Source: Macrostomum lignano (Eukaryota). Taken from it: 64,000 bases of DNA. The stretch is from the NCBI GenBank assembly GCA_002269645.1, contig NIVC01003077.1:1-64000 (forward strand). Reading direction: 5' to 3'. The position numbers and the translations under genes were made by a program. Positions within the stretch are counted from its first letter, which is position 1, and each line of letters begins with the position of its first letter. This document shows, in pieces, positions 3,305 to 31,500 of this stretch. The notes beneath the pieces were generated by a model, which saw nothing but the letters and a program-made list of their open reading frames with translations, had not been told where the DNA came from and did not search any database.

Positions 3305-5578
3305 CTAGCTGCTGTTCTCCAGCCACTCCAGAACCTTCACCAGCAGATCCCTGGCAATGCCAGAAGCCTCCTGCACCAGCCTCTTGGCCAGCTCGATAGC
3401 AGCCTGCTTGCCGTGCTCAGCCAGCTCCCTCAGGATAGCCTTGACCTGCTCCATGTCGATACCGATGATGTCCAGGATGTAGGCATTGCGGTTCTCCAGC
3501 CACTGAAGGACCTTGATGAGGACGTCCCTCAGTTCTCCTTCGGCATCCTGCAGGAGCTTTTTAGTCAGCCTGATGGCGGCCTCCTTTCCGGCGTTAGCCA
3601 GCTCCCTCAGGATAGCCTTGACCTCATCAATGTCAATATCGATGTTGTCCAGGATGTAGGCGTCGTCGTTGCGGTTCTCCAGCCACTCGAGGACACGGAT
3701 GAGGATGTCCTTCAGAGCTCCCTGGGCCTCCTGCAGCAGTCTCTTGGCCAGCTCGATAGCGGCCTGCTTGCCGTGCTCAGCCAGCTCCCTCAGGATGGCC
3801 TTGACCTGCTCGATGTCGATACCGATGATGTCCAGGATATAGGCAGACCTCTGACGCTCCAGGATCTCGAGCACCTTGATGAGGATGTCCTTAAGAGCTC
3901 CTTGGGCTTCCTCCAGCATCCTCTTGGCCAGCTCGATAGCGGCCTGCTTGCCGTGCTGAGCGAGCTCCCTCAGGATAGCCTTGACCTCCTCCACGTCGAT
4001 GCCGATCAGGTCCAGGATGAAAGCGTCGTCGTTGCGGTTCTCCAGCCACTCCAGAACCTTCACCAGTAGATCCTTGGCAATGCCAGAAGCCTCCTGCACC
4101 AGCCTCTTGGCCAGCTCGATAGCGGCCTGCTTGCCGTGCTCAGCCAGCTCCCTCAGGATAGCCTTGACCTGCTCGAGGTCGATACCGATGATGTCCAGGA
4201 TGTAGGCGTCGTCGTTGCGGTTCTCCAGCCACTCCAGAACCTTCACCAGCAGATCCTTGGCGATGCCAGAAGCTTCCTGCAGCAGTCTCTTGGCCAGCTC
4301 GATAGCGGCCTGCTTGCCGTGCTCAGCCAGCTCTCTCAGGATAGCCTTGACCTGCTCCATGTCGATGCCAATGATGTCCAGGATGTAGGCGGACCTCTGA
4401 CGCTCCAGGATCTCGAGCACCTTGATGAGGATGTCCTTCAGAGCTCCTTGAGCGTGCTCCAACATCCTCTTGGCCAGCTGGATAGCGGCGTCCATACCGT
4501 TCTGAGCGAGCTCCCTCAGGATGGCCTTGACCTCCTCGACGTCAATGCCGATCAGGTCGAGAATGAACGCGTCGTCATTGCGGTTCTCCAGCCACTCGAG
4601 GACACGGATGAGGATGTCCTTCAGAGCTCCCTGGGCCTCCTGCAGCAGTCTCTTGGCCAGCTCGATAGCGGCCTGCTTGCCGTGCTCAGCCAGCTCCCTC
4701 AGGATGGCCTTGACCTGCTCGATGTCGATACCGATGATGTCCAGGATATAGGCAGACCTCTGACGCTCCAGGATCTCGAGCACCTTGATGAGGATGTCCT
4801 TAAGAGCTCCTTGGGCTTCCTCCAGCATCCTCTTGGCCAGCTCGATAGCGGCCTGCTTGCCGTGCTGAGCGAGCTCCCTCAGGATAGCCTTGACCTCCTC
4901 CACGTCGATGCCGATCAGGTCCAGGATGAAAGCGTCGTCGTTGCGGTTCTCCAGCCACTCCAGAACCTTCACCAGTAGATCCTTGGCAATGCCAGAAGCC
5001 TCCTGCACCAGCCTCTTGGCCAGCTCGATAGCGGCCTGCTTGCCGTGCTCAGCCAGCTCCCTCAGGATAGCCTTGACCTGCTCGAGGTCGATACCGATGA
5101 TGTCCAGGATGTAGGCGTCGTCGTTGCGGTTCTCCAGCCACTCCAGAACCTTTACCAGCAGATCCTTGGCGATGCCAGAAGCCTCCTGCACCAGCCTCTT
5201 GGCCAGCTCGATAGCGGCCTGCTTGCCGTGCTCAGCCAGCTCCCTCAGGATGGCCTTGACCTGCTCCATGTCGATACCGATGATGTCCAGGATGTAGGCG
5301 GACTTCTGACGCTCCAGAATTTCGAGGACCTTGATGAGGATGTCCTTCAGGGCTCCTTGAGCGTGTTCCAACATCCTCTTGGCCAGCTCGATAGCGGCGT
5401 CCATACCGTTCTGAGCGAGCTCCCTCAGGATAGCCTTGACCTCCTCCACGTCGATGCCGATCAGATCCAGGATGAAGGCGTCATCCTGCAGTTCACCCTT
5501 CGCTACCTCCTGCAGAGGAGCGGCCTGGGCAAAGGCGAATGCCAAAGAGGCGAGTCCTAGTAGAATCCAAAGCTTCAT
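3305..5578 (-). CDS. Secreted polyprotein precursor, 757 aa: signal peptide, short acidic pro-piece and 12 tandem 58-61 aa amphipathic helical units; function unknown
   Basis: ATG at 5578 in tcaaacATGA context; signal-like MKLWILLGLASLAFAFAQA; uninterrupted ORF to TAG at 3305; GC3-rich codons. Repeat consensus [YF]ILD[IL]IGIDxE[QE]VKAILRELAEHGKQAAIELAKRLxQEAxGxxKDxLxKVLEWLEN plus linker RNDDA / RQRSA. Confidence 0.92.
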   Translation of the reverse strand: MKLWILLGLASLAFAFAQAAPLQEVAKGELQDDAFILDLIGIDVEEVKAILRELAQNGMDAAIELAKRMLEHAQGALKDILIKVLEILERQKSAYILDIIGIDMEQVKAILRELAEHGKQAAIELAKRLVQEASGIAKDLLVKVLEWLENRNDDAYILDIIGIDLEQVKAILRELAEHGKQAAIELAKRLVQEASGIAKDLLVKVLEWLENRNDDAFILDLIGIDVEEVKAILRELAQHGKQAAIELAKRMLEEAQGALKDILIKVLEILERQRSAYILDIIGIDIEQVKAILRELAEHGKQAAIELAKRLLQEAQGALKDILIRVLEWLENRNDDAFILDLIGIDVEEVKAILRELAQNGMDAAIQLAKRMLEHAQGALKDILIKVLEILERQRSAYILDIIGIDMEQVKAILRELAEHGKQAAIELAKRLLQEASGIAKDLLVKVLEWLENRNDDAYILDIIGIDLEQVKAILRELAEHGKQAAIELAKRLVQEASGIAKDLLVKVLEWLENRNDDAFILDLIGIDVEEVKAILRELAQHGKQAAIELAKRMLEEAQGALKDILIKVLEILERQRSAYILDIIGIDIEQVKAILRELAEHGKQAAIELAKRLLQEAQGALKDILIRVLEWLENRNDDAYILDNIDIDIDEVKAILRELANAGKEAAIRLTKKLLQDAEGELRDVLIKVLQWLENRNAYILDIIGIDMEQVKAILRELAEHGKQAAIELAKRLVQEASGIARDLLVKVLEWLENSS

Positions 5579-5627: not shown

Positions 5628-5633
5628 TATATA
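5628..5633 (-). promoter_or_regulatory. Possible TATA box of the polyprotein gene
   Basis: TATATA lies about 28 nt upstream of an Inr-like TCATCA (5605-5600) and about 50 nt upstream of the ATG. Confidence 0.3.
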
Positions 5634-7007: not shown

Positions 7008-10000
7008 GTAGGTCTTTCCCACTGAAACATGCTTAGTTCTTTGCCCAGGAATCAACTGTGATTGTCGTGTATTAGCCTGTAGAACGAATTGGATACATAA
7101 GAGTTACACAGTTTCTACTAGAAAGACACCCAGGCTTATTGACAAGTTTGTCTTGCCGGCATTCTTATCAGGGTGCGCTTGTAGCTTCACACACTGGCTA
7201 GGGGGGGGGGGACGGACCTAGCGACACATGCGAGGGATTCGCGTTTGAAAAGGGGAGCTCAAAATAGAGTAGAATACCGGCTTGTACGAGTATTGGCATG
7301 GTTGTATGCGCATTTGAAAACTTCGAGAACAGATAACCAAATCGATGAAATTTGCAATGTATTTTATCTTAGTGCGGAGAATGGATCAGAGTTCGTATTC
7401 AGCAAATGGACCCGGACCTGTACGACATCGGCGCCAGTTTAGAGGAGGCCATGGAGATGCAGAGAGTTCACGAACAGCTGCGCAACAAACTGCAGGTAGT
7501 TAAAGTGTTCGATTATTCAAACAATTTTGCGAGTATTAGGACTCAGAACCAAGACTGCACAGACTACCTAGAAATTTTTCACAAATTTTAGGCAAAGCAG
7601 TCGCAAATCTCAGAGCTTCTGGCCCGAGCAGACGATCTCGTGGCTCAACAGCGCACCGCACGGAAGTTTACGAAGCCATGGCCCAGTCGCTGGGTAAAGC
7701 CTGGCAAGATCTTCAAAGCATCATGGAGCGACGCAGCGACTTGCTAGCCCATGCCGTGTTATTCTTCACGCACGTCAGCCAGTATTCGAATCAATTCGAC
7801 CTAATCACCGATCTATGTCGACACTTCGACGCACCGCACGACGGACAGACAGTGGAGCGTCTGCTCCATGAGCATCACGAAATGAAGCAGAAGCTGTTGG
7901 AGCAGTCCAAAGTTACACTGGAAGTTGGACACCAGCTGCTAGATCATTTGAGGAGGCTGAGCTGTGCCACCCAGTCTGAGCAGCGGCAATCTGTTCTGAC
8001 GGCCTGTAATCGCGTGGAGCGAATTCTCGAGAGCCTGACAGAGCGACGGCGTGGCCTTGACGAGCTGTGGCGCGGTCGAAAGCACCGGCTAGAAGAGGCC
8101 ACCAGGCTGACTTCTCTCGACGATGAACTTCAGCGGCTGCTGAGATCGCTTGCCAGAGGCGATTACCTGGTCTCAAATTGCGAGATCGGTCGGAGCCTTC
8201 AGGAGTCTGAGATGCTGATGAAAGAAGTTCTGGCGTTCGGCAACGAGGCGGGCGATGTTCAAGACGCTCTGCTCCGATTGTGCCGTTCCGCAACGTCTCT
8301 CATGGAGCCGGGAGGCTTTGCGGACACGGACTCAATCAGACGGAGGCTTGAGAAGGCCGACCGCGTAGCAGAAGAGTTCATCCAGCGTTTGGAGACGCGA
8401 AGGCGACTGCTAAATATGGCCGTAATTTTCTACAGCGAAGTTGAAGTGCTATTTCAGCGAGCCCGTCGACTTGACATTGCGCCAAATGAGTCACTTCACG
8501 AGGTTGAAGCCAGGCTGCCTGGGCTTCGCACTACCGGACAGGCATTGCTGGCCAAGCTTGAGCCGGACAGTCACTCTGCGCATGCGGTCAGGTCGAAGCT
8601 GAAGGAAGCTGAAGACTTCCTAGACAAGTGCTACCAGCTCGTGCGCCGTCATGAACAAGAAGATGAGAAGCGGACTTGCACTAGTCGGCTGGAGATTCTG
8701 AACACTTGGATGGTTGAGATTGTCTTCCGTCGGCTGCGCGAGGGCAACGATCCAGGAACTACGGTGGCCTCAGTGCAGAACTTCATCGATGCGCACCAGC
8801 ATCTGCTAGAGGAGCTATCAAGACGCGAGGGCGAATTTCATCAGGTTGAAATTCTAATTGAACCGCTACACGATAAGCGCGCATTCCTTCGGCGCCTGCA
8901 GGAGCTGCGCCAGAAACTGGGCCATGCTAAGACCATCTGCCACTTCCGCCTGGACGTTGGTCATCGCTTGCTGGCCCTACTCAGACAAGCGCAGCAGGAC
9001 GAGCTCAGTATCCAGGTGTTCCTGAGTGGCCTTGACGAGGCCAGAACCCGGGCTGACCTGCTGACAGACTACTGGTTTACGGACTCTGCGAGACAGCAGA
9101 ATATGCTTGTTAGCCAGCTGTACGATCAGCAAGCGAGCATCAGGGAGATTCTAAAGAAGGTATGACTGATTTGCGTAGATTTTTATCCAATAATCCAATG
9201 ATCAAGACTGTTAATAAGGAATTTATATGATTTTCCCGTCAGATTTCTGCCAGTCGCACGGCTGAAGACGACGACTTCTCGGCTGGGCCGCTCAGCCGCT
9301 ACCTGGAGTCGCAGCTGGCGCGCATCGATGCTCACCTATCGGCCCTGCACGAGCAGTGGAACTCGGCGCAGCGCCTACGCGAAGAGGTCGGCATCTATAA
9401 GCAGCAGCTGCGCGAGTTCAACAGCGACGCCCGACGAGCCGAGGATATGATGCGCGACGCTGAGGCTAAGTTTACGTCTACTGTGCACTTTCGGTGAGCA
9501 CATTTTTTGTTGCTGACATAAGTTTCTAACCCTACAAGGGAGAGACGTCTAGATACTTAAAGACTCGAGTTGAAATATATTGGGGATCAAAGCTCATTTG
9601 AAGCTAAAGAACCGTTGCATTCCATGCTCCATGCTCATTACATTTATTGAATAGTTCAAGCCCCAAAACGGGCCTGTCAAAAAAGGCCTTCTGCTACTGT
9701 TTATTTGTATGCTATTAACTTTATCATTAATTTTATTGCACTTCATATTAGTATTATGAAAATTTTGCTAGCCGCTTATCTCTGCAACAATTCTCAAGAA
9801 ATATCTTTCCACCCTCCAATGCAGTGACTTTCTCGACTTCGACCAGTTTCTAGCCGAGCACAATCGCTCTCGCGACGTAGTCAATCAATTCGTCAATTTG
9901 ACCCTGACCAAGGGTCGCGACCTGCTGCACATGCTGTCAACACGAAGCGAAGACAGCGGCGCAGCCAAGGAGACTCGCAGCGCTCTCAGCTCGCTTCAGG

Positions 10001-13000
10001 CGGCCAAAGAGCAATGGGATCGCGTGTGGCAGACGTCTCTAAGTCGAGCGCAGGATCAGCTGAGGTCCACGGAAGCGTTGGGGCAAATAGAAGTGAGTGC
10101 AGAAATGTGAACAACTGATGCTTCACTAAATATGCATTGATTTTAGTGCAATAATAATTTGTTTCGAAAGTCTCTGCTGAGCATCGACACACCAGAATGA
10201 ATAAAACCGTAGGCACAGAAGGATTGCTGCGTATCAGAGGGCTTCACATTGATGGGAGTTTTGCCTTTAGAATTCTTGGCACGGCTCCAGTTGCGTAAAC
10301 AGACAGTCAGATTTTCTTCTGCGTCAAACTGTTCCTAATCTTTTTTCTAGCTATTTCTGGCGCCAGTGACTGGTTGCTGCTGGTAAAGATGGCGCAAACC
10401 ACCGCACAAATTTGGACTCTCCCGTGACTGCATCGGGACATACGTATATTCAGCGGTTCAGCATTTTCCTCTCCCCGCACCTAGACAGGCAGCCCTCCAT
10501 CACAATCGTTAGTCACGCCGAGGCAGGCAGCAGCAGGGCATCCTTCCCCCCCTCTGCTAGAAGCCCTGCTGTCGGACTTCGATCGATAACCTCGAACCTT
10601 TGCTAAGCTGAACATCGCGGCATAGGCATTTTCCTAGTTCAAGGGATAGGGGCAGATAAGGCGATCGGGCTAGCAGGGGAGTGTAGTTCCGCATCTCCCA
10701 GTTTCCAGAAAATTCCATTCCACCAGCGCAAGGAATTTTCCTTGTACAAGCCAGTGCAAGCGAACCGACGCTATATTCGTCGAAGGCGGTTTTTTGCGTT
10801 TTAGTCAAAACAGAACTTAGCTGGAAGCGAATCGATGTAGACGGAGAGGAAGGAACAAATGGTGGCTCGGACCTTTCCACTGCTTCAAGCGATGGATCCA
10901 TTAATAATCCTTCCGGGGGGCCGCTTGGGCCTGGTCTATGCAGCTACACGAAGCGAGATATGCGCAAAAAAGCTGGCGTAATTTTCAATGCCATCCTATA
11001 GCCGATGTTTCGCTGAAATGCGGCATAGTCACGTTTTGTTCTATAAAGGTGCGATAGTCCAATGAAGCGGAAGCTGCAGTTCGGCTGACTAAAAGCTGCG
11101 AAAGAGTGGGGGGTACACAGGCACACAAGGGCTGGACACTGACTAAATTCTATTGGGACTACTGGTACGCGCTGGATGGGTCCGAGTTTAAATAGCATAG
11201 TAGACACCGCCGAAAAAAGAGAAATAGTATGGAATGGATGAATGACAATGGGCGGCGGAGGCGAGCACAATTAAGTGAGTTGTGCAGATAATTATTAACT
11301 CAGGACTGTGCTTGGCTGGTCAGTAGCGCACATTCTCTCTAGCTCATTCTCTTTCCATCTCTTTCCTCTGTTCTTCGAGTCTTCTTTAGTCAAAGTGTTT
11401 CAATGGACTAACATGTACAGTAAAGTGGCCATGCCTGAGCTGACCTGAGCACCTGCTCATGTGGTACTCATCGTACGAGTACTCAGCGTAGACAAGCAGT
11501 TATTTCGGCTTTTTAGAAAGCCGTAAGAATTTTTTTATAAAAAACGTCAAGTCAACATGCAATCGTCATCGGGGCCCAATTTTCAGTACGTTGAGCGAGA
11601 AGTCGATCAGGCAGTGCTGGAGCTTCGCCGAGCCCGCGACGCCATGCAGACGGAGCCATCGGAGAAAACACGAGACAGCCTGCAACTGCTAGAGAACCGA
11701 GTACCGGTACGGTTGCTGATCTACGCCTAGAGTTATGTAGAACAGAACAGAACAGAACAGAACAGAACAGAACAGAACAGAACAGAACAGAACAGAACAG
11801 AACAGAACAGAACAGAACAGAACAGAACAGAACAGAAAAGAACAGAACAGAACAGAACAGAACAGAACAGAACAGAACAGAACAGAACAGAACAGAACAG
11901 AACAGAACAGAACAGAACAGAACAGAACAGAACAGAACAGAACAGAACAGAACAGAACAGAACAGAACAGAACAGAGCAGAGCAGAACAGAACAGAGCAG
12001 AACAGAACACAACCGACCAGATCATGGTTTCAATGGTCTCAATTCCATGGTGTCAGTTGAATTTCTAATAAATTTTCGGACTTTTAGCAAAACTAACGAA
12101 AATTGTGAATTGCAGTATCTAAAAGATCAAGTCCGAGCATCCACTGAGCGTTCGGAGAGCCAGGTGACCATGGAGCGGGCCAATCAGTTAAAGAAAAAGT
12201 GGAGCCACTTTCTCATTGACTTGCAAGAGTTCCGCACCCAAGTCGATCTCAATCTCAGCTTCCGCGACTCGTCGAAAAAGGTTGAGACGCACATCAGTGA
12301 GCTTTGGTTCTTCCTGAAAAGTAAGCGTCAGCAGCTGGATCAGTCTCAAGATCCGATTGTTTTCGATCGTATTGAGAAGGAGCTGCAGGACCGGCTGAAT
12401 ACGGTGCCGCAGGAAATCGATCAGGAACTGAGAAACCTTAGCGAGTTGTCTTTCCAGCTGTATGGCTCCGCTGGACCGCAGCGGGTGCATCCGCTCACTG
12501 TGAAGGCCCAGGACTCTATCGGTGCGCTCAAGTCGCTGGATGACGAGTGCGTACAGAAGAACGAACACAGGCGCCAGTCGCAGGGTCCGCTTCAGGCGCC
12601 GGTCATCACTCAGCCGCTGCGCAACATCCAAGTAGAGGAGGGCTGCCCAGTTACACTCGAGGTGGCCTACAAGGAAGATTCTCGCTGCCAGACCGCCAGT
12701 CCGCAGTGGTTCAAAGATGGTATCACAGTTGACAGTCCTGACTACAAGACGCGCGCCTATCCGGGCCACGCCACCCTCACCATTGACGAGACATTTGCTG
12801 ATGACTCAGCCAAGTACACGTGCAAGGTGAGCAACCCCGCTGGCGCAGATGAAACTAGTGCCTACCTCAGCGTAGTCGAGACGCACCGAACTTTGGAACC
12901 GCCGGACTTTACCAAGCAACTTCGATCTGTGGATGTTCTTGAGGGAGAACCGCTAACGCTTGAGTGTCACGTGATTGGCGAGCCGTTTCCAAAGGTTCGC

Positions 13001-16000
13001 TGGTTTCGGAACGACATCAACCTGGACGCGTCGCCGGAGTACGTCATTACGCTAATTAACGGAGTATGCACGTTAAAGGCGCGCAGCATGCAGACAATAC
13101 ACGCGGGCCGGTATCTGTGCAAAGCAACGTCATCTGCTGGATCTGCATCTACAACTTGTCTAGTTGGCATCAAACAACTTCAACGCCCTGTCATCCTGCA
13201 GCAACTTCCGTCAACTGCCGTCGATGTTGGAGTTCCAGTGCGTTTGGAGACCAAGTTTGAGGCGATGCCGCCGCCTGAAGTATCTTGGCTGAAAGACGGT
13301 GTCCCAGTGTTTGACTCGCCGGGTCGCAAAATCAATATCGGAGCCAACGCAACCAGCCTATCGATAGACCGTGCCGAGCCCAGAGACCAGGGTCGCTATT
13401 CAGTGTCCGTGAGGAATCCGGCCGGACAGGCCCAAACTAGCGGCACTCTAAACGTCAGCGGACCCGAAGATCTCCACCGGCCAAGCCAGATGAAGAGACA
13501 GGCCCAGCCTCAGCTGGACGATTGGCAGCAGCCAAAGCTTGCGAAAAAGCAAAACTCTAAACCAGTATTTGTATCGCCTCTAAAGGATGTTACAGTGCCA
13601 GAAGGAGCGCCCGTGCGCCTTGATTGCTCCGTCACTGGTGTTCCTGATCCTTCTGTTGAGTGGTTTAAATCAGGCCGCTCTATAATGGAATCATCTGACT
13701 ATAAATTTTCTATTGAAGGCGACAAGGTGGTCTTGACAATACCGGAGGCCTTTTCAAATGACACGGCCGAGTACATGATCCGCGCGTTCAACGATTTCGG
13801 CTCCGCTGAGAGTCGCTGCAAAGTGAGGGTTCTGCCACCGATCACTAACGAATCAGCGCCCGTCGACGAATCTGTGGCGCCGACAAGAGCGAAAAAGCCG
13901 CAGCGAGAGCTCCGCATGCCACGAGATGAAGGCGCACCACCCGAATTTGTTCGCAAGCTGGCCGGTCAAAACTGCAGCGAGGGCGAGCCCTTAGAGATGT
14001 CAGTGCAAATCACGGGAAGTCCAGTGCCACAGGTGGTTTGGTTCAAGGATGGCAAGAAAATCGAACCATCGCCGGACTTCATTCTCGGAAACGACGGTGA
14101 GACAAGCTTCATGAAAATACCGGAAGTCTTTCAAGAGGACTCTGGTCGCTACGAAGTCGTCGCCACTAATCCGCACGGCACAGCTAAGTCTGGCGCAAAC
14201 CTGCGCGTCAGACCGTTGTCAACTGAGGGAATTAAGATCTCTCCGCAGATGTACGTGAATCAGTCGGCCCAGCAACCACCAGAATTTACTAAACTGTTCC
14301 GCGATCAGACGGCTAAAACATCAGAACCAATCACCATCTCATGCGAAGTAACCGGCATTCCGGAGCCCATTGTCCGCTGGACATTCAACGGTCAGCCAGT
14401 TAAGCCAAGCCAAGCACGCATAACAGTGCAGGGCAATAAGCATAGCCTGAGCATTCCCTCTATCGATAGCAGCCACGCCGGCAGGTACGCAGCCACAGCG
14501 GAAAATCCTCACGGTCGAGCCACCTGTGCCGCGCTGCTTGTAGTGGAGGATGCAAAGGAAAATCGTTACTTTCCAAGGACTACCTACGAGACTGCCACCC
14601 ACGTGATTAGCAAAAAGTATTCAGCTTCAGCGGAACACCTGCAGCAGATGCGAGTTGTGCCCGCGATTCCATGGCGACCGGCCAGTCCAAGGTAAATCAA
14701 AGGGTATTTTACAACTTTTACATTTAACTGCCCTTAAATGTTTAATTATTTTAACATTTTATTCACATACATCCGCTCGATTCCGCAGGTCGCATTCATC
14801 CTACTACAAGACAGAACTGACTGGAAGCACTTTTGCTCCCGTCGACCTGACATTCAGCATGCCGATTCCGCCTGAGTTTATCCAGCCAATCAAGTCTGTG
14901 ACTGCTAAAGAAGGGGCGAGGGTTGAATTCGACGGATTCCTAGTTGGCAAGCCGGAGCCCACTGTTCGATGGTTCCGCGGTGGCCGAGAGTTGCACGACA
15001 GTCCCGACTTTGAAATCAAGTTCAAGGACGGTCGGGTTACCCTATCAATACCAGAAGCATTCCCGGAAGATCAGGGAACCTACACCTGCGAGGCGTCGAA
15101 CAAGGGAGGGCAGACGTCTTCTTCGGCTGAACTAGTCATTCGCGCCAGGACTCTCGCTCCTGTTTTCCTAAAAGGACTCGAGAGCCAGCAGGTTTTCGAG
15201 GGCCAACCTGTTCACTTCGTTGTGAAGGTCGGGGGTGACGATTCAACACGAGTGTCTTGGTACCGAGACGGCAGCAAAATTGAGAGTTCACCAGACTTCA
15301 CAATCGAGCAGATAGGCGACCTTCACACGCTGAAGATTCCGGAGTGCTTCACTGAAGACAGCGGCCGTTACACAGTGACGGCAACTAATGAAAGCGGAGA
15401 GGTTGTGTCATCGGCCACTCTCACTGTTAAGGAAGTGACGGGAACTGCCGAGGGACCTCCCGTAACAAAGCGAAAGAAAACTACCGGACTAGAATACCAG
15501 TATCAAACCGACCATCCACAGTATCCTGTCGCACCAAAGGTGGCCGAGGAGTCTGTTTCGATAGCCACTATCCAACCAGCAGCTCAGCGACCCCAACAGC
15601 TGCCACCGAGATTCACGCAACGTCTTATGCCGGCCTATTCGGCTAATGAGGGTGACAAGCTTACCCTTAATGTTCAATTCGAGGGCAAGCCTGCACCATC
15701 TGTGAGTTGGTTCAAGAATGGAGCTGCAATTTTAGAATCATCTGACTACACCGTTGTTACCAGCGAGTTCGAATCTCGACTAACAATTCCGGAAGTCTTC
15801 CCCGAAGACTCGGGCAGCTATGCGTGCTCAGTTGAAAACCCTGCTGGCAGCGATGCTTGCGAGTCTAGCTTAGCTGTTCAGCCAAAGCCGCCTTCACAGG
15901 AGCCGCCGACTTTTGTGCGACCTCTTCGTCCAGCGCACCTGCATACTGGAGAGCGGGCAAATTTCCAGGTAGAATTTACTGGCAAGCCAAGACCAAGCGT

Positions 16001-19000: not shown

Positions 19001-22000
19001 CGGAGATGCTCTGGTTCCGCGACTCTGTCAAGGTCAACGAGGATGACCTGCACAAAATAGTGATTAACGAAGAAGGCATTCACTCGCTGATATTCAACAG
19101 TCTGGTAGCGGCAGACTCCGGTGAGTACCTGTGCATCGCTCGCAACCGGGCTGGCGAGGACCGGTTCCAGGTATGCGTCAACGTCAAGCCGCGAGAGCAC
19201 GCCAGTGTGCCGCGATTTGTCCAGAAAATCTCTACGCTAACGGTTAACGAAGGCGAACCAGTTGAGTTCCACTGCGCTGTTGAAGGGGCGCCTCAGCCGT
19301 TGCTGTCCTGGCAAAAAGACGGCCGTATGATCAATCCGGAGCAGTGCGAGCGCTACCAGATCGCCGTGGTTGGCCTGACCACCTCATTGACTATTCCGAT
19401 TGTCGAGCTGTCCGACGCGGCCTGGTTCCAGTGCACCGCGGCCAACATCGCGGGTACAGCGTGCTCCCGGGCCAAGCTGAACGTGCTGCCGGTGCTGAAG
19501 GCGCCGGAGCCCGAGCGCAAACTGGTGATCACCAAGGCCAGCAGTACGCCCCGCCGCCCGGAGCCGGAGCAGCAGCCCGAATGGATCTCCACAAGGCGCA
19601 TTGACGCGTAAGTAGCTTGCATCCAGGTACTTCTGAGGGACAGAGTACCTCGGCATTGAAACGCCAACGGTATTAAATCCTCAAACTAATACATTTACAC
19701 AAACAACCAACAGTACAATGGAGTCGCAGCCGCCGGCGGAGACAGAGAACTACGCCCCGACATTCACGAAGAAGCCGGCCCAGATCAAGGTTGCTCAGGG
19801 CGGCACGGCGAAGTTCATGACCCGAGTGGCTGGCAACCCGATGCCCGAAGTCACCTGGATTCTGAATGGAAATCAAATTGAGACGGTGAGTGAGCTTGCA
19901 GAGTTTTTATTTGGAGATTCAAGTCGAAACTCATTAGCTACTTTGAGTAGCCATCGGAAAATTAAAGTAAATCGTGCAATTTTTTTTATCAAACCTTTCA
20001 AAAAATCTACCGGTGTCCCACATATAATGATAATAATAAACTCAGGAGGGCTTTGGGGCACCCTGGCGCTACGACTTCAGCGACATCGTACAACAGTCCC
20101 AGCGCTGAGGCAATTCTGCCCATTCCGCTGACTTCTGAGCACATTCAATAATGTACGCAGGCACGCACTCATACACAGGCTCATGCAGGGTTTACAGCAG
20201 CCCTTTGAATTTCTAATGTACACTCTCCGAGCCTTGGGGGTTGGCCCTTCGTGTGTATGAATCGCGAAAAATCCCCGCCCGACGCACGACGGAATCGAAC
20301 CAAGGGTCGTGGTGCAAGAGTCAGACGCGTTTTCCTCTGCTCTGCCCCCACTGGAGACCCCCACAAGTAGGAAGCGATGTTCCGGCGAAATTTCTTTCCT
20401 TGGATCCTACTGCGAAATCGGTTTCAAGAGAACAAAACAGTACATGTACATCGAGTGTCGCTGGTCTCCATCGATTGATAGATTCTAAATGAAATATGGT
20501 CGATTTGGAGCTTAAAATCACTATTTGCGGTTGCAATATCTTACCAATTTTGTCACCAAATCGCACTGCAGACAAGTCGATTCCGAGTGTGGTTCGACGG
20601 CATGATGCACAACCTGGAGGTGTCTCGAGCCGAGCCCGAAGATACGGGCGTTGTTGAAGTGGTCGCTATCAACGATCTAGGCGAAGTCAGGTGCTCGACC
20701 GCGCTCACGGTGGAGCCAGCAGCTGATTGGAGATCTCAGCTTAAGCCGCTGCAGGGTAAGCTGCTTGCAACTGGCTTTATTATGCTTCTCACGTCTCTCT
20801 CGCCATCTCAACTCTTCTCTCTCACTTCTCACCTTTCCCATCTCAAATCTAATATCTTATTTCTCCGATCTCACTTGTCCAATCTCGTTTTTCAACCTCA
20901 TTTCTCAAAAATTGGTCAGAGCAGAAAGCTACATTCACCCCCCCCCCCCGGGTATTAGGGGCGGTGGATTCGTTATCACCCAAAAAGGCAGATACTCTTC
21001 AACAGCCCTAAAAAGCAGTTTTACCAAAGAATGAGCAGTGGAAGAGGAAAATATTGTTTAGGGCTCAGTTTACTGCGGCCTTTTTGCTGCCACACCCAGT
21101 CGGCGCTTGTCTTTTCCTCGTCTCGGCACTGCACTGTCTCTGCGATATCGAGACACGAAGAGAGAGAGAGAGAGAGAGAGAGCCCTCAGCATCTCAATCT
21201 GCATCGCTCTGGCCAAGATATTGGGCGTGGTCTATGCGCCAGTGAGAGAGAGAGAGAGAGAGAGGTCAGGGTGGCATCTCTCTGCGATTGAGTCATTTAT
21301 CCTACCTATCAGTCTCTGATTTTCTGCCTCTAATGTTCTACCTGTCCACCTTCTTACTCTCCACCTCTCCACCTGTCCATCTTCTTACTCTCCACCTGTC
21401 CATCAATTCTTACTCTCCACCTGTCCATCAATTCTTACTCTCTACCTGTACATCTTCTTACTTTCTACCTGTCCATCAATTCTTACTTTCTACCTGTCCA
21501 TCTTCTTACTCTCTACCTGTCCACCTTCTTACTCTCCACCTGTCCATCAATTCTTACTCTCTACCTGTCCACCTTCTTACTCTCCACCTGTCCACCTGTC
21601 CATCTTCTTATTCTCTACCTGTCACCTTCTTACTCTCTACCTGTCACCTTCTTACTCTCCACCTCCACCTGTCCATCAATTTTTCTCTCTACCTGTCCAC
21701 CTTCTTACTCTCCACCTGTCCACCTGTCCATCTTCTTACTCTCCACCTGTCCAACTTCTTATTCTCTACCCGTCCGTCTTCTTTGTCCCTTTTTATGATT
21801 AACTTCCAACTTGTTGACATGCCCTAAATTTCTCCCCAGCTAAGCTGCAACATCCTCAAAGTTTATATTCCCAGTTCCAATTTCTGTTTTGTTTATCACC
21901 TCCACAGCTGTCCAGGCATGCTGGTCTTATTTCTTGAATATCCCACGCAGTCCAGACGGATAGCAATTAGCTATCCGTCTGGACTGCTTTACCTGCTGTT

Positions 22001-25000
22001 AGGCCCTCTCCCTTATCCCTTATCCTTCCATGGAAATCCTCGTGGGGATTTTACTCGCGCTAGCTATTACGAGGCGTTGGGAGTTAAATTTGACAGAATT
22101 GACAGTTTAGCAACATCACCATGCCCTTGTTTCTTATAAAATATTTATGCTTTTTGGAATACTGTAAGCTAAGATGAGCCCTCAGATTCGTTCTATAAGA
22201 TTCTTTGTACCATATAATAGATACACATAACTTTTTTTAACAGTCAGCAAAATTAACAGCATTGAGATGCAATACCCCACTGCAGTTAAGGAGGCATAAC
22301 TTTTGATAAGTTCGTGGTCAGAATTTTGAAAATTCCTTCACTGAGTCATTTTTAAGTAAAGCCGCTATGAAATAAATTGGCGGCTGTTACTCTTTCTGAC
22401 TATTAAAAAGAATCCCCTCGAGGGACACCCCTCGTATTTTGACAAGAAAACAGACATACAAACTGCACATACAGCTAGTTCTCTTCTCATAACTATTGGT
22501 CATCCTCGTTTTGTATTTGCGCTTGGCCAGTGTGGAGATAATGGCATTGTGTGGGCATTGATTATACGATTTCCAATTTATTTGTGTAAATAAAGTTGTT
22601 AGAATACTCGTACAAGTACCAGATGAATACCGCACAAAAACGCACAATATGTACCGCCAGACTACATCCGGGTAAGCCTTGTTCTGTGACACGCAGGGGT
22701 GCTAAAAAATCTGTTCTCCCAATACGGTGCAGTTGTGGTCATTTTTTGATAATGTCGGCCGCTGAACCTGGGGACCGGTGTTCAATCAAGCGACCGACGC
22801 ATTGACGCCTTCATCATCAGCAGCCTCCGGCGACGCCGCGGCAATCCCAGCGATGGTGTTTCTAGTGGCATCTTTCCTGACTCCGGCCTGCTGTCTGGGA
22901 TCTGCTGCTGCTGTCCAGAGGGCGTCGTGCCTGCCTCCGGCCAGGTGCAGCCTTTGGCAGGCCCGGTAGGCCAGGCTGCAGGCGGGGTAGCAGCACAGGC
23001 AGGGCACAAACAAGGCCAGCAGGCAAACGCAGCTCCAGGCCTTCAGCCGGTCCAGCAGACTCGACCGGGCGTCACCGTCGTTTTCGTCGTCTTCTTCGTC
23101 GTAGTCGTCGGCTTCGTTGCCGTTGACTTTCGCGTCGGCGGCGTGACCGACTTTGCCGTGGTTGTCATCCTCGCCGCAGCTGTTGGCCTCCGAGTCGCCT
23201 TGCCGGGCCGACCTGCCGCGACCAACCAGCAACTGGCAGGGGTTGATGTAGTCACCCTCGCTGTCCGCGCAGCAGTGGTAGGACACCCCGTCGGCCAGCG
23301 TCAGGCAGGTCAGGCGCTCGATGCAGACCCTGAGCCGGTCGGGCGCCTCCGGACAGGCGCCTTTCAGGTTGCGCCGATCGTCGTAGAGGCGCAGGCAGTA
23401 GCGACACACCTGCTGGTGAATGCGGCCAGCTCGGCTGGAGGAGCCTGCGGCGGCGGCAGCGGTGCTTGCTGACGCGCCGTTGCGCAGAGCGTCCTGGCGA
23501 ACCAGCGGCACGGTGTTTCGACGCATCGAAATCCTGTTGGAGTCGCCGCGCACGAGATTGCTGCTGTTGCTGCTTGGCTGCTCCTCCGGGTGCTGCTGCT
23601 GCTGTTGCTGGCCCAGAAGGTGCGGATCAATGTCTGCAGAGGTCAGCGAGGTCACAGACGTCAAAGCCGCCATTGCAGCCGCTTCCGGAGCAGTTGCCAT
23701 TATTGCTACTAGAAGGAGAAGCGTGGAATTGGGGTGTTGATCGGTTCTACAAAGATGCAATAAATTTGTTGGCATTGCTTATGAAGCTTCTGGTGGTGTT
23801 GAAAAAGCTTCCAACTCCCCTTAGCTCAATTCCATACTTTTACCGTAGTCTCAGCACCCCCTCGTCCCAAGTTTTCATCCGCAAATAACCGCAGCAGCTG
23901 AAGTCCTCTCGATAAGTCCTCTCGCGCCTTTACTTCAAAGTAACCTACCTATAGTTAGTCGCAAAGAGACCCACAAGCCGGAATATGAAAATTGAATAGT
24001 CCCAGTGGCCCCATAGCCCCCTTCCCGTTCACCTATTTCCCCTTTCTTGCTTGCTTTCTACGTGCCTCGCAACTGTTTCGCATAGCTTAGCTACTAGGCC
24101 TCTTTTGGAACTCGCTTATCTTGCCATTTCTTATCCCAAGTAGCTGGGCGAAGGAATTCCCTCTTTCACCTAACTGCTGGGACTTTTGACAGGTGCTGTT
24201 TATCGCTCACTCACCTTCTCACTCTCCCTGTCACTCGTTGCAAAAAAGACAACTTATAGTGCGCTTATTTCTACTTTGGTCCCCGACCCAGAGCCGCGAA
24301 CCCAACTCTGAACCAGTCCGACGACTGACGCTTTCCCGAACTAGTAGTACTTTTCACTGGGGCATGAGCTAAGCTAGACAACTTTTCTTCCATGGCCCGA
24401 ACAAAGTTCAATTGAAAACTGCTTACACGTGTACAAAATTGGAATTGGCTGTAGCTATTGATTTGATTCTTCTGTGTGCCTTTCTCCCGATTGTGTTTGC
24501 ACAGTTCAGCTTTCTTCTTCTTCTGTTCCTGTTTCTTCCGTTGCTGGTGGGATGATGCAACTGCTAGGGTTAACTTGCGCGATTCTGCTTCCCAGCACAT
24601 CGTCCGTCTTTTAATTCCTCTCGGCAAGCACTCCCTCCCTGTTTCCCCCCCCCCCCCTACTGGCACCCAATATTTTTCAGTCCCGTCTGCAACACTCGCA
24701 GTTTCTTCATTAACGAGTTCTCTTCTCTGGTTGGCTCGGGCTCCTTTAGCAACGTAGATGGCTGGGGAGAGAGAGAGAGAGAGAATGGGAGCGGGGAGGG
24801 CAGAACAGATGGGGCGAGGTCCGCCCGCCCTCTTCCCTATCAGGGCTCGGTGTACGCAGGCTGATGAGGAGGAGGAGCCTGTCCAGCTTCATCAAGCTGG
24901 GATGTATCGCCACCAACGCATTGTTCGACTGCTCATGCAATAGATACGACTCCTAGTTATAGATTTTTCAAAATTACATTACGAGACTAAGCCCAAATAA

Positions 25001-25514: not shown

Positions 25515-28500
25515 GAGAAGAGACACAAACCTTTAAGCGGGCCGGATTGCTATTGCGAAGTTCCAAAGGACCCGAGGGCCGGATAGAGAAACTTCGCTGG
25601 TCGCATTTTGCCCTCGGGCCGGAGTTTGCCGATCCCCGTGGTCTTGGTGTTTCTAATAACACATAGTTCGTAACAACTAAAGAAAAGTATTTTTACCTCA
25701 GTTCCGACACATTTTGACACGAAAACCGTCATTCACACGGCATCAAAACTGTTACGCTCGTAATTGCAGCGTTCAGACGGTCCGCCGCGGAGGAGCTTCT
25801 CCCGGAGGCCGAGCCGCGCGACGGTGCCGGTAGGGCGCCAATTTTCAGTCGGCTGCTTCAGCCGGTTCGGGTGCACGAGCTGCAGCCAGTCAGGTGAGCG
25901 GGGCAGCTGCCATCTGGTTTTGCCTTCTGCTGTGTATGCTGCTATTGATTTTTATTTAGCAAATGCGTCAAGTATAACTTTTGTAAGTTTATGCACTTTT
26001 GGTCTCTGTTTGGTTTCTTCTGCAAGTTTCTTCGGCAAGTTTCTTCGGCTTTCTCTTTCCAACTTTCAAATCCAATGTGAGATCGCGTCTTATCTCTGGT
26101 CTCTCAACTCTACTCTCTTATCTCTGGTCTGTCATCTCTACTGTCTTATCTCTGGTCTCTCATCTCTACTCTCTTATCTCTGGTCTCTCATCTCTACTCT
26201 CTTATCTCTGGTCTCTCATCTCTACTCTCTTATCTCTGGTCTCTCATCTCTACTCTCTTATCTCTGGTCTCTCATCTCTACTTTCTTATTTCTAATCTCT
26301 CATCTCTACTTTCTTATTTCTTTCTGGTCTGTCATCTCTACTGTCTTATCTCTGGTCTCTCATCTCTACTCTCTTATCTCTGGTCTCTCATCTCTACTCT
26401 CTTATCTCTGGTATCTCATCTCTACTTTCTTATTTCTAATCTCTCACCTCTACTCTCTTATTTCTTTCTGGTCTCTCATCTCTACTCTCTTATCTCTGGT
26501 CTCTCATCTCTACTTTCTTATTTTTAATCTCTCACCTCTACTCTCTTATTTCTTTCTGGTCTGTCATCTCTACTGTCTTATCTCTGGTCTCTCATCTCTA
26601 CTCTCTTATCTCTGGTCTCTCATCTCTACTCTCTTATCTCTGGTATCTCATCTCTACTCTCTTATTTCTAATCTCTCATCTCTACTGTCTTATCTCTGGT
26701 CTCTCATCTCTACTCTCTTATCTCTGGTCTCTCATCTCTACTCTCTTATCTCTGGTCTCTCATCTCTACTTTCTTATTTTTAATCTCTCACCTCTACTCT
26801 CTTATTTCTTTCTGGTCTGTCATCTCTACTGTCTTATCTCTGGTCTCTCATCTCTACTCTCTTATCTCTGGTCTCTCATCTCTACTTTCTTATTTTTAAT
26901 CTCTCACCTCTACTCTCTTATTTCTTTCTGGTCTGTCATCTCTACTGTCTTATCTCTGGTCTCTCATCTCTACTCTCTTATCTCTGGTCTCTCATCTCTA
27001 CTCTCTTATCTCTGGTATCTCATCTCTACTCTCTTATTTCTAATCTCTCATCTCTACTGTCTTATCTCTGGTCTCTCATCTCTACTCTCTTATCTCTGGT
27101 CTCTCATCTCTACTTTCTTATTTCTAATCTCTCACCTCTACTCTCTTATTTCTTTCTGGTCTGTCATCTCTACTGTCTTATCTCTTGTCTCTCATCTCTA
27201 CTCTCTTATCTCTGGTCTCTCATCTCTACTCTCTTATCTCTGGTATCTCATCTCTACTTTCTTATTTCTAATCTCTCACCTCTACTCTCTTATTTATTTC
27301 TGGTCTGTCATCTCTACTCTCTCATCTCTACTGTTTCGTCTCTACTCGCATCTCCACTCCCATCTCTAATCTCGAATCTATTTAGCCACTAGCTCTATTC
27401 TAGCTCTTCCCATCCGATGCCAGACTCCGAGTGGAGTATTTCGGCGATCCGAGTCCCCAGGTGGCTTGGCTAAAAGAAGGCGCACCAATCGAATCCTCAC
27501 CGGATGTGAGCATCACGTCGGCGCCGGCCTGGTCCGAGCTGTTCATCCCGTCGGTAGCTCAGTCAGACGCTGGCATGTACACCGCCACGGCGCAGAATCC
27601 GCTGGGCGTTGCCAACACAAAGGCTCGGCTGACTGTGCTGTCTCCCGAGTCTGGCGGCCCCACCCCGGTCAGGGAGGAGGCGCCGGAGTTCGCCACTTTG
27701 ATCCGGGATTTGGCTGTAAGTGGCCTACTTTACTCGCTTTCGATACATATCGGTAATGTTGGATTCGAGATTTCTAGAGTTCGTGAACTTTATTATCTCA
27801 GAGGAGCTTTTGCTGTTGAATACATTGGCTTTGACGTCTAATAAGGTGACATTCAGTGTCTAATAGGGTGACAAACAGTGTCTAATAGGGTGACATACAG
27901 TGTCTAATAGGGTGACATACAGTGTCTAATAGGGTGACATACAGTGTCTAACAGGGTGACATAATGGTGTCTAATAGGGTGACATGTAGAGTCTAATAGG
28001 GTGACATAATGTCTAATAGGCTGATATATAATGTTTAATAGGGTGACTTTAGTGTTTAAGAATGTGACCAAGTGCCAATCAATGCCCATGAATTCACGTA
28101 CAGAAAAATTGCATTTGCATTTGTTTATCAGGTCATAAATCTGTTTTCAGTTTTTTTCCTGAAAAGCTGCTTTTGCTCCAATCTTTTTCATTTGATAGTG
28201 TTCGCCAGTCTACAATTGTCTAATTGGTATTGAAATATCCTACACAGGGCTACACGGTTCGTTCCCAATGGGCTACCGAGTATCCATAATCTGATGCGCA
28301 TAATTAATCCTCCCCCGTAGGCAATCAGGTGAAATCAGGTCAGTCTCTCCCAAATCAAAGAGAACCAAAAGTATTTCAGTATAACTGGGACAGCTGGGAC
28401 AGGGAGAGAGAATTCCTAATTTTATTACAGCATTTCCCCAGGCTACTTCGCTATTATTAGCCGAATTAGCGAATTAGCGAATTAGCCGAATAAGCCTTTT

Positions 28501-31500
28501 GTTCCTTTTTTGTGCTTGCTATGAAAAAAGTGAATTGAGCTAATTCTCCTCGCAACCAAGTGTCTACTCAATGCAAGCGAAATACGCAATATACGCAAAA
28601 TCTTTCATGAGCCATTTTTACTTATTTTGAGCAGTTCATAATGACTCTACTGGCAGTAGTGCGCATCGAATCTTTCTCAAGATTCCGCGAAGCTGTTCAC
28701 CTAACTTTTAAGTACTCGCACAGTTCACATGTATTTAGATTCACAAGATCAATAATCTGTGCATGTCACTCTCAGCTCACTCTGCATGTCATGTCACTCT
28801 CAGCTCACTCAGCATCTCATGTCACTCTCAGCTCACTCTGCATCTCATGTCACTCTCAGCTCACTCTGCATGTCATGTCACTCTCAGCTCACTCTGCATC
28901 TCATGTCACTCTCAGCTCACTCTGCATCTCATGTCACTCTCAGCTCACTCAGCATCTCATGTCACTCTCAGCTCACTCAGATCACTCGGCGTCACTCTCA
29001 GCTCACTCAGCATCTCATGTCACTCTCAGCTCACTCTGCATCTCATGTCACTCTCAGCTCACTCTGCATCTCATGTCACTCTCAGCTCACTCTGCATCTC
29101 ATGTCACTCTCAGCTCACTCTGCATCTCATGTCACTCTCAGCTCACTCTGCATCTCATGTCACTCTCAGCTCACTCTGCATCTCATGTCACTCTCAGCTC
29201 ACTCTGCATCTCATGTCACTCTCAGCTCACTCTGCATCTCATGTCACTCTCAGCTCACTCTGCATCTCATGTCACTCTCAGCTCACTCAGATCACTCGGC
29301 GTCACTCTCAGCTCACTCAGCATCTCATGTCACTCTCAGCTCACTCAGCATCTCATGTCACTCTCAGCTCACTCAGATCACTCGGCGTCACTCTCAGCTC
29401 ACTCTGCATCTCATGTCACTCTCAGCTCACTCAGATCACTCGGCGTCACTCTCAGCTCACTCAGCATCTCATGTCACTCTCAGCTCACTCAGCATCTCAT
29501 GTCACTCTCAGCTCACTCTGCATCTCATGTCACTCTCAGCTCACTCAGATCACTCGGCGTCACTCTCAGGAAGTAGAAAAATTTTCAAATCACTCACAGT
29601 TGGTCACTCAGTTTTTTCGTGTCACTAAACTCTCGGGTCTCATGTCTGTCACTAAAGCCATTGGCCCCTTGCCCTCCCAGGTGTCCGCAGGCGAACCGGT
29701 GACCCTGTCATGCACCGTGACCGGCCAGCCAAGGCCCAGCATTCACTGGCGTCACGAGGGCCGCCCGGTGCCCGAGAATTCGCCCACCTGCCGCACCCTT
29801 GTGGAGGAGAGCCAAGCCATGCTCATCATTTTCGAGGCCCAACCGTCGGACGCCGGACGCTACGAGTGCGTGGCCGCCAACCCGTCCGGCCAGGCCGCCT
29901 GCTCTGCGCAGCTGACTGTGCACCCGGCCCTCACGGAGTCGGCCACCGCGCCAGTTTTCGCTAGGCCGCTGCAGAGCCAGACGGCAACAGAGAACCAACG
30001 AGTAGTGCTCACCTGCCAGGTTGAATCGCAGCCGCCGCCTGAGGTGTCCTGGTACTTCCAGACCAATCAGATTCGACCTTCGAAGTATTTCGAGATTCTT
30101 GAACAGCCAGAGGTCGGGGCTTACAGCCTGGTGGTGACTCGGGCGCACCCCGACGACTCCGGGACCTACACAGCAGTAGCCCGCACCGAGCTGGGAGAGT
30201 CGCGCTCCTCAGCTGTACTGCAGGTGCAGCCGCAGCAGCAACAGCAACAACCAGCCAGAATTGTCAGGCCAATGTCAGCAGAGGTCACCGTCCGCGAAGG
30301 CGACCGCGTCAGCCTGGAGGTTGAAGCGGTTGGCGAGCCCGAGCCGACAGCCGCCTGGTTTCGTGAGGGCACCGAATTGGACAGTTCGCCCGATTTTCAA
30401 GTGAGTCTGGCGACCATTTCTTTGCTACTAATAGTAATATATCTTTTTGCAGCCCATTTAGGCTTACGCGCATTGAATTTAATCAAAAATGCGTTTGCCA
30501 ATGTAACGAAGCTTTTGTCTATGGTAGCAAGGCTGGCACAGCGGCATTTCATTTGGTCCAACAAGCATCAATTTGGTCCATTTTTTTATTAGAGGCAGGG
30601 GGGTTGTGTGCACCCTGACGCACTTCAAGCGACATAGGCACAAAACCGGCGAGAGGCATTACTGCCCATTCCGCCGACTCCCCTGAGCAGGCATACAAGC
30701 GCGCGGATACGTATGCAGGCACACACTCACACAGGAGTGTACAGCAGCCCTAACTTTATTTTATCGTTAGGCATGTACACTTCACTGCGCCTTGGGGGTT
30801 GGCTCTCAAGGCCGTTAATTGCACGAGCAGAGCCAAGCCGAGATTCCAATTCAGCCCCAAATTAATGTGACTGCACTTGGAATCGAGCCTGGGTCGCTGG
30901 CACACCAGAGCCTGCGCTAGACCGCTGGGCTACGGCCCCCCTTCAATTTGGTTCATAGCTTCATTTGCAACTGCTGCGGAGGAGCAAGCTCAGCCCCAGA
31001 ATTGTAGACCATATGCTAGGCTGTCGAACGAATGCCATTGGCTTGTGATCGAAGCGCTCGACATAGGTGAACAACCAAAGGACATTGCAGACGGTTGCGA
31101 GAAGACAAGAGTTTGTCGAATGGCTTACGAGCATTTGGACCAAAGAGATGCTTGTTGGACCAAATTAAATGCGGCTGTGCCAGCCTTGCTACCATAGACA
31201 AAAGCTCCGTTACATTGGCAAACGTATAAAAAAGCAGATTTTGGTATTTTGGTTGCTAAATAGACTGTCCTCGAAGCATACGCTTGTAATTTAAGCTGAG
31301 TCATGGAGGGGCAAAAACTCTGAGTTGTGATAAAATACACAGGGTAGGACTTGAAACCCAAGAAACCGTTTCAGCATTGTAAAAGCTGGAATAGATGGCC
31401 TATACAGTATGCCGGGGTTGTTTCTACTTCGTATTTCATCCTGTCAGTCACGTATCGCCATAATCTTTCGCAGATTTCAAAGTCTGGCCGGCTGTACGCT

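Follow-up and report, generated by a model that had tools for sequence, protein, structure and literature searches.

The 64,000-nucleotide (nt) stretch of the Macrostomum lignano genome analyzed here (positions 1–64,000 of contig NIVC01003077.1, GenBank assembly GCA_002269645.1; hereafter the window) carries on its minus strand, at positions 3305–5578, a gene for a protein built of a predicted signal peptide, a short acidic piece and 12 head-to-tail units of about 60 amino acids (aa). This protein is best described as defining a new lineage-restricted repeat family, so far found only in Macrostomum-like sequences, and on balance we lean towards the reading that it is a secreted multi-module protein that stays intact or largely intact. 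An earlier note on the same DNA had instead proposed a precursor from which twelve membrane- or lipid-active peptides of ~56 aa would be released by cleavage at an arginine (Arg) in each linker, followed by exopeptidase trimming of X-Ala dipeptides. Judging from the comparison with relatives described below, such Arg-directed cleavage into twelve peptides is not supported as a property of the family.

The open reading frame (ORF) runs uninterrupted from an ATG at 5578 to a TAG at 3305–3307 and specifies a product of 757 aa, which is annotated in GenBank as "hypothetical protein" (P0009 is the identical protein). A TATA-like box read from the sequence (TATATA; 5628–5633, minus strand) precedes the GenBank model start (5608) by 25 nt and the ATG by 50–55 nt. 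The signal peptide, the 15-aa piece and the 12 units beginning with [YF]ILD that the earlier note had listed were all read from this minus-strand ORF. The putative signal peptide spans aa 1–19 (MKLWILLGLASLAFAFAQA; 5522–5578), with cleavage predicted after AQA; the call is a rule-based one (n-region, h-region and AXA), made according to the von Heijne −3/−1 rule. It is followed by the acidic N-terminal piece of 15 aa (APLQEVAKGELQDDA; 5477–5521), which looks like a degenerate unit end plus linker, and then, in the order of translation, by unit 1 (F-type, 60 aa, ending RQKSA; 5297–5476), unit 2 (Y-type, 61 aa, ending NRNDDA; 5114–5296), unit 3 (Y-type, 61 aa; 4931–5113), unit 4 (F-type, 60 aa, ending RQRSA; 4751–4930), unit 5 (Y-type, 61 aa; 4568–4750), unit 6 (F-type, 60 aa; 4388–4567), unit 7 (Y-type, 61 aa; 4205–4387), unit 8 (Y-type, 61 aa; 4022–4204), unit 9 (F-type, 60 aa; 3842–4021), unit 10 (Y-type, 61 aa; 3659–3841), the divergent unit 11 (59 aa, with KK in place of KR, ending NRNA; 3482–3658) and unit 12 (Y-type, ending EWLENSS; 3305–3481 including the TAG stop), all on the minus strand.

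Across the units, which range from 59 to 61 aa and all start with [YF]ILD, 29 of 61 alignment columns are invariant, including I2, L3, D4, D9, G24, K33 and G41, and R34 is nearly so, the exception being unit 11 (KK). The 11 junctions comprise six NRNDDA, four RQ[KR]SA and one NRNA, every one of them with an Arg, in agreement with the linker types (R-NDDA, RQ[RK]-SA and R-NA) given in the earlier note. The mature protein has a computed mass of 82.9 kDa, as against the ~83 kDa first estimated, a pI of 4.86, a grand average of hydropathy (GRAVY) of +0.05 and an L+A+I+V content of 47%; it is free of Cys, and its single Pro is located in the 15-aa piece, so that the units themselves have none, again as first described. 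The NSS at the C-terminus is the sole N-glycosylation sequon. Predicted tryptic peptides that would span junctions include NDDAYILDIIGIDMEQVK and SAYILDIIGIDIEQVK. One point of the original description had to be corrected: single units, taken to be neutral to slightly acidic (about −2 for unit 2), have net charges of −3 to −5 and pI values of 4.7–5.0, and in this they are unlike cationic membrane-active peptides.

Purifying selection acts between the units (dN/dS 0.02–0.45). Units 1 and 6 differ by 0.37 synonymous (dS) but only 0.01 non-synonymous (dN) substitutions per site, units 2 and 7 by dS = 0.20 and dN = 0.01, and between unit types dN/dS is 0.15–0.67. The GC content of third codon positions (GC3) is 0.82 in this gene compared to 0.53–0.73 in neighboring coding ORFs, and because of this excess the strong codon bias suggests heavy expression. 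Relatives that differ in GC content preserve the sense frame in their protein sequence, and the repeat anatomy is far beyond chance.

At the nucleotide level, Tandem Repeats Finder (TRF) described the array as 11.7 copies of period 183 (score 2400) with a super-period of 363. Units 3, 4 and 5 are 100% identical to units 8, 9 and 10, respectively (first 57 codons compared), and an exact repeat of 575 nt (3669–4243, again at 4578–5152) is offset by 909 nt, or five units, reflecting either a recent duplication by unequal crossover or a collapse or expansion in the assembly. Unless they are an assembly effect, the identity of units 3–5 with 8–10 and the 575-nt repeat would thus mean that the array expands and contracts by unequal recombination. 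Three long ORFs (218, 280 and 171 aa) carrying a LSQLPQDSLDLL... repeat run along the opposite strand of the array (plus strand, 3413–5560); these were rejected as genes and regarded as by-products of a stop-poor, codon-biased repeat.

We next consider family and fold. A Pfam search with the full protein gave 42 matches, several of them above gathering scores (GDH_HM3, WSLR, Ribosomal_L10, PASTA, MarR and others), but single units scored nothing above cut-off, and these families were rejected, since the matches are artefacts of weak scores summed over 12 repeats. A sequence search of the PDB matched designed helical repeat proteins alone (5cwm, E = 1e-6; 5cwh); homology to these was likewise rejected, as the matches reflect an idealized helix composition. 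No similar fold emerged from a Foldseek comparison with the PDB (best E = 0.22, TM ≤ 0.27). Together with the search of 1.84 billion proteins by hidden Markov model (HMM) described below, these results uphold the earlier statement that the protein cannot be assigned to a named family; no strong match to a characterized family, the outcome set beforehand as refuting the note, was found. The M. lignano gene is not mentioned in the literature searched, which included a seminal-fluid screen.

Two AlphaFold models were used to describe the units. The full-length model, computed without an alignment, had a mean predicted local distance difference test score (pLDDT) of 47 and a predicted template modeling score (pTM) of 0.19 and was usable for secondary structure only; a model of three units with a 20-row alignment reached a pLDDT of 64.8 and a pTM of 0.48. 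According to DSSP, both models have three helices of 13–15 residues per unit, broken at G24 and G41, so that the glycine breaks noted earlier at these two positions are both invariant in sequence and seen in both models. In the three-unit model, helix 3 of an F-type unit runs through RQKSA into YILDII (H45–68), whereas a break, modeled with low confidence, separates the units at the NRNDDA junction. Some 240 degrees of the helical wheel of helix 3 are hydrophobic; beyond the junction comes YILDIIG, and nowhere else is the protein as hydrophobic as in these two segments together.

Relatives of the gene were found both within M. lignano and beyond it. The M. lignano paralogs PAA53513.1, PAA48434.1 and PAA79178.1, all annotated merely as "hypothetical protein", have ~12–18 units. 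One paralog locus (L006; NIVC01003076.1) has ~18 units, one of them degenerate, and is frameshifted in the assembly; another partial copy is located 9.4 kb further upstream, beyond a peroxiredoxin gene that lies between the two. The array at this locus (9895–13178) is broken into two overlapping frames, 9895–12687 and 12609–13178, which explains why there are several "partial" GenBank models (784, 1093 and 707 aa) for this paralog, and the split is probably an indel error of the long-read assembly. Outside the species, an exhaustive HMMER search of 1.84 billion representative proteins with a unit profile returned five matches at E up to 0.001, three of them true relatives, and further searches brought the total to five distant fragments: P0011 and P0012 from NCBI assembly GCA_041443025.1, and P0003, P0005 and P0013 from European Nucleotide Archive (ENA) metagenomes. 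A word-indexed protein search with the full-length query gave one match only, and scans of Joint Genome Institute (JGI) metagenomes returned no relatives. The layout of signal peptide, acidic piece ending D-A and tandem ~60-aa YILD units was assigned to the window protein, to the paralogs P0001, P0007 and P0008, and to the five fragments.

The five fragments have GC contents of 36–47% and are 36–48% identical to M. lignano units, with the unit hallmarks Y-I-[IL]-D, EHGK and G-A-x-[KR] retained. P0011 has a signal peptide followed by an acidic piece that ends S-D-A before YIID, its counterpart of the 15-mer being LPVEDASQTEVEVTSDA. Conservation in relatives extends to the hydrophobic core positions, to the Gly turns, to D4, D9 and K14, and to the Ala preceding Tyr. 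After splicing, the relatives' seven junctions, each before Y, read IIDEIGSDEA, NQNQGNA, GNKQGDA, NKNGQGST, IEEEIAGDA, NKIQGAQDEA and NQNKSEDA. None of the seven contains Arg, three (IIDEIGSDEA, NQNQGNA and IEEEIAGDA) contain no basic residue at all, and the other four have Lys at varying distance from the boundary; the linkers, of 4–9 residues, are rich in N, Q, G, S, D and E, and the residue before Tyr is Ala in six cases and Thr in one. The mid-unit dibasic KR (KK in unit 11), which the earlier note had offered as an alternative cleavage site, is indeed present in M. lignano, but its counterpart in relatives is EQ, QQ or KK. Introns of the relatives are of the GT-AG type and in phase 1, and interrupt the unit at codon 45, where helix 2 gives way to helix 3. 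None is placed at a junction, so that the junction comes to lie mid-exon; a single exon can contain exactly one A+B pair of the relatives' two unit types. All cross-identities between these A/B types and the F/Y types of M. lignano are 36–48%, and orthology between the two sets was rejected.

An additional metagenomic sequence was set aside. A 506-nt contig (ENA ERZ27309203, k141_404803) contains an ORF (P0010) in which the N-terminal domain of a bacterial Rho is followed by the final 44 residues of a unit of the Macrostomum type, with ENRN before the stop. A natural Rho_N fusion was rejected, since the contig consists of the GC-rich 5' end of a bacterial rho gene plus, at the 3' end, 132 nt that match M. 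lignano units at 87–89% identity; the contig is in all likelihood a chimera created during assembly at a common FAILKEL stretch, and its unit part indicates that this metagenome includes DNA from a relative of Macrostomum.

The reading that we lean towards can be set out as follows. The 19-aa signal peptide would route the chain to the endoplasmic reticulum and be removed after AQA, leaving a mature product of ~83 kDa that would be a chain of twelve all-alpha modules of ~60 aa. Each module would consist of a very hydrophobic N-terminal segment, [YF]ILDxIGID, and three helices of 13–15 residues broken at Gly24 and Gly41, and the modules would be connected by polar linkers of 4–9 residues whose sequence and length drift freely. 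The protein would be exported and act as one chain, or in no more than a few pieces of several units each, and not as twelve free peptides. Because a free unit of 56 aa could hardly bury helix 3 and YILDIIG, the hydrophobic surface of the modules is probably covered by neighboring modules, by other copies of the protein through self-association, or by a bound hydrophobic ligand such as lipid. We infer secretion, high expression and an intact functional form. In keeping with this, what is conserved (aliphatic residues of the core, Gly at the turns, Asp at the helix caps and a small residue ahead of the hydrophobic N-terminal segment) is exactly what a fold would be expected to keep, the linkers behave as unconstrained polar connectors, and paralogs vary in unit number and tolerate a degenerate unit. 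The 15-aa piece, too, looks like a degenerate unit end plus linker (compare EVEVTSDA with the internal EEEIAGDA), a resemblance that would account for its D-A ending without processing.

Several observations weigh against an intact chain. The confidence of the AlphaFold models is low to moderate (pLDDT 47 and 64.8; pTM 0.19 and 0.48), which leaves inter-module packing tentative. The boundary between Ala and [YF] is conserved, in two divergent lineages even where the N-terminal acidic piece meets the first unit, and every M. lignano protein finishes with a complete unit (ENSS or ENRN before the stop); this conservation and these unit-end stops suit processing at least as well. Arg is present in every M. 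lignano junction, the relatives are short fragments that yield a small sample of junctions (n = 7), and the state of the mature form was deduced from sequence.

The best-surviving alternative, which we regard as possible but distinctly less probable than an intact chain, is that the polyprotein is cut at every junction, either at the linker Arg with subsequent trimming or at the conserved Ala-Tyr/Phe bond by an endoprotease tolerating a hydrophobic residue at P1', to yield twelve three-helix mini-proteins of ~56 aa and of two alternating types. The one junction feature kept family-wide, a small residue followed by [YF]I[LI] (Ala in 6/7 junctions of relatives and in 11/11 here), would suit this scheme, as would the D-A before [YF] that ends the piece after the signal peptide both in M. 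lignano and in the distant P0011, the unit-end stops of the M. lignano proteins, the Arg in each of their linkers and the multi-copy arrays of varying copy number, a pattern usual among precursors selected for dosage. Cleavage at the linker Arg in particular, as the earlier note had it, fares poorly: none of the 11 junctions has a dibasic, R-X-[KR]-R or R-X-X-R motif, and no basic residue at all is found in three of the relatives' seven junctions, all of which lack Arg. Monobasic convertase sites need a basic residue at P4, P6 or P8, and this rule is unmet here, LENR/N having no basic residue at any of these positions and ERQR/S having Glu at P4. Trimming of X-Ala dipeptides, a specificity of the DPP-IV/Ste13 type, would fit SA and NA but neither N-D/D-A, whose first dipeptide has Asp in place of Ala or Pro at position 2, nor the odd-length 15-mer; in both the register fails. 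Among modes of full processing into single units, the Ala-Tyr bond is most plausibly the cut site, and a non-canonical cleavage at Ala-Tyr/Phe that requires no basic site, giving a stoichiometric mix of acidic ~6.5 kDa three-helix mini-proteins of two alternating types that might pair or bind lipid, is to our mind a somewhat long shot, though a real one. Cutting at any site within the junctions is harder to reconcile with linkers that are unconstrained in length and sequence, with relatives' exons that straddle the junction and with units so acidic and very hydrophobic that, if free, they would expose much hydrophobic surface; the F-to-Y junction modeled as a continuous helix argues weakly in the same direction. 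The stop itself is also less telling than was thought: in M. lignano it does fall, after ENSS, exactly where the linker Arg would stand, but the ORF of one relative (P0005, found in two independent metagenomes) stops mid-unit, 22 residues into a unit.

Partial processing, in which only the Asn/Gln/Gly-rich linkers would be cut, for instance by an asparaginyl endopeptidase, to leave two-unit products of ~120 aa and six helices, seems unlikely. Its appeal is that a class of potentially cut linkers (NRNDDA, and in relatives NQNQGNA, GNKQGDA and NKNGQGST) alternates in both lineages with a class that would stay intact (RQRSA, and in relatives IIDEIGSDEA and IEEEIAGDA), that the TRF super-period is 363 nt, that AlphaFold draws the F-to-Y junction as a continuous helix and NRNDDA as a low-confidence break, and that a single exon of the relatives can hold an exact A+B pair. 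This scheme is, however, purely inferential; Y-Y neighbors also occur in M. lignano, the F/Y and A/B types are not orthologous (36–48% cross-identity), and the confidence of the model is moderate. Finally, the notion of a coding-looking satellite or assembly artefact without a functional protein, for which the 575-nt exact duplication inside the array, the assembly frameshift at the paralog locus and the existence of long antisense ORFs could be cited, is effectively refuted by an intact sense ORF of 757 aa with signal peptide and stop codon, by dN/dS values down to 0.02 at dS = 0.37, by copies on at least four M. lignano contigs, by spliceosomal introns in relatives of 40–50% protein identity and other GC content and by an annotated gene model that begins 25 nt past a TATA box.

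Comparison with known systems helps to place the intact chain that we favor. Tandem three-helix bundles (staphylococcal protein A and spectrin-type repeats), alpha-solenoids and designed repeats resemble it in having 58–60 aa per unit, three short helices and short linkers, and tandem three-helix-bundle proteins function uncleaved; there is no homology, however, and the units here are much more hydrophobic and carry an extra hydrophobic N-terminal segment. The nematode polyprotein allergens (NPA; ABA-1) are likewise secreted invertebrate proteins with a signal peptide, tandem, near-identical, Cys-poor helical units in variable copy number and a hydrophobicity compatible with lipid, and the released NPA units bind fatty acids and retinoids. 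They differ in that NPA units are ~133 aa long, compared to ~60 aa and three helices here, and the tetrabasic R-X-K/R-R sites that define NPA processing are absent from all junctions of the M. lignano protein; consistently, single units had no NPA match in Pfam at E up to 1, and PDB searches at E up to 10 returned no ABA-1 chain. Cestode antigen B (HLBP), which comprises ~8 kDa oligomeric lipid carriers encoded by single-unit genes, offers a possible analogy in being flatworm-restricted, secreted, helical and hydrophobic with amphipathic units of ~60–70 aa; the arrangement differs (a 12-unit array here as opposed to single-unit genes), the likeness would lie in lipid binding, and a Pfam scan of single units (E up to 1) gave no match to the Taeniidae antigen family.

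The multi-copy precursors invoked for the cleavage model (yeast alpha-factor, promelittin and apidaecin) share a signal peptide, an acidic pro-piece and repeats preceded by D-A, S-A or N-A. In contrast to these, the junctions here have a single Arg or R-Q-R and no KR or RR, the only KR being inside helix 2; the 15-mer, read as AP-LQ-EV-AK-GE-LQ-DD-A, is of odd length and mostly not X-Ala or X-Pro, and NDDA is out of register; the products would be acidic helical mini-proteins of ~56 aa as opposed to short peptides; and the Arg at the junctions is missing from relatives. Saposins and prosaposin have six conserved Cys, forming three disulfides, per ~80-aa domain whereas this protein has none, and there was no SapB_1 or SapB_2 match in Pfam. 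For apolipoproteins (ApoA-I, A-IV and E, and apolipophorin III) there was no Pfam match either, the period is 60–61 aa and not that of 11/22-mer amphipathic repeats, which Pro often interrupts, and the mature protein has one Pro.

The remainder of the window is largely taken up by one giant muscle-type gene (7678–64000, plus strand; GenBank model of 6790 aa), with spectrin/DUF7799 repeats followed by dozens of Ig I-set domains and, from ~56 kb, by Ig and Fn3 domains, a domain order that makes it titin-, twitchin- or obscurin-like. Within it, ORFs at 38644–43667 (plus strand) encode endonuclease/reverse-transcriptase, RVT_1 and RNase H domains and correspond to an element resembling a long interspersed nuclear element (LINE). 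Because this element sits between two blocks (39548–39929 and 43760–44695) of one 138-nt (46-codon) tandem repeat, it may represent a retroelement insertion in a repetitive region of that gene. At 22786–23775, on the minus strand and hence antisense to the giant Ig gene, a 329-aa ORF encodes a Sprouty domain (E = 1.6e-16); this ORF is presumably nested in an intron of the giant gene. Mini- and microsatellite arrays of up to 52 copies were found at 11739–12021, 21365–21783, 26088–27347, 28762–29599, 32026–33842 and 34488–35495, with periods of 5, 23, 28, 28, 35 and 24 nt; they account for the extreme GC and AT skew of the corresponding bins, and some contain spurious long ORFs, for example at 28641–30592 and 34306–35514.

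M. lignano is a flatworm used as a genetic model in work on regeneration, on adhesion and on sexual selection; orphan proteins are common among its gland products. The gene described here defines a family without a name, a literature or a recognizable fold, and its product, as far as the signal peptide and codon usage can tell, looks secreted and highly expressed. If cut at the Ala-Tyr bond, the protein would represent a novel type of precursor in animals, one that holds many copies of a mini-protein and is processed with a new specificity. If, as we favor, it remains intact, it would be a natural protein resembling an idealized designed helical repeat, and as such attractive for structural and materials work.

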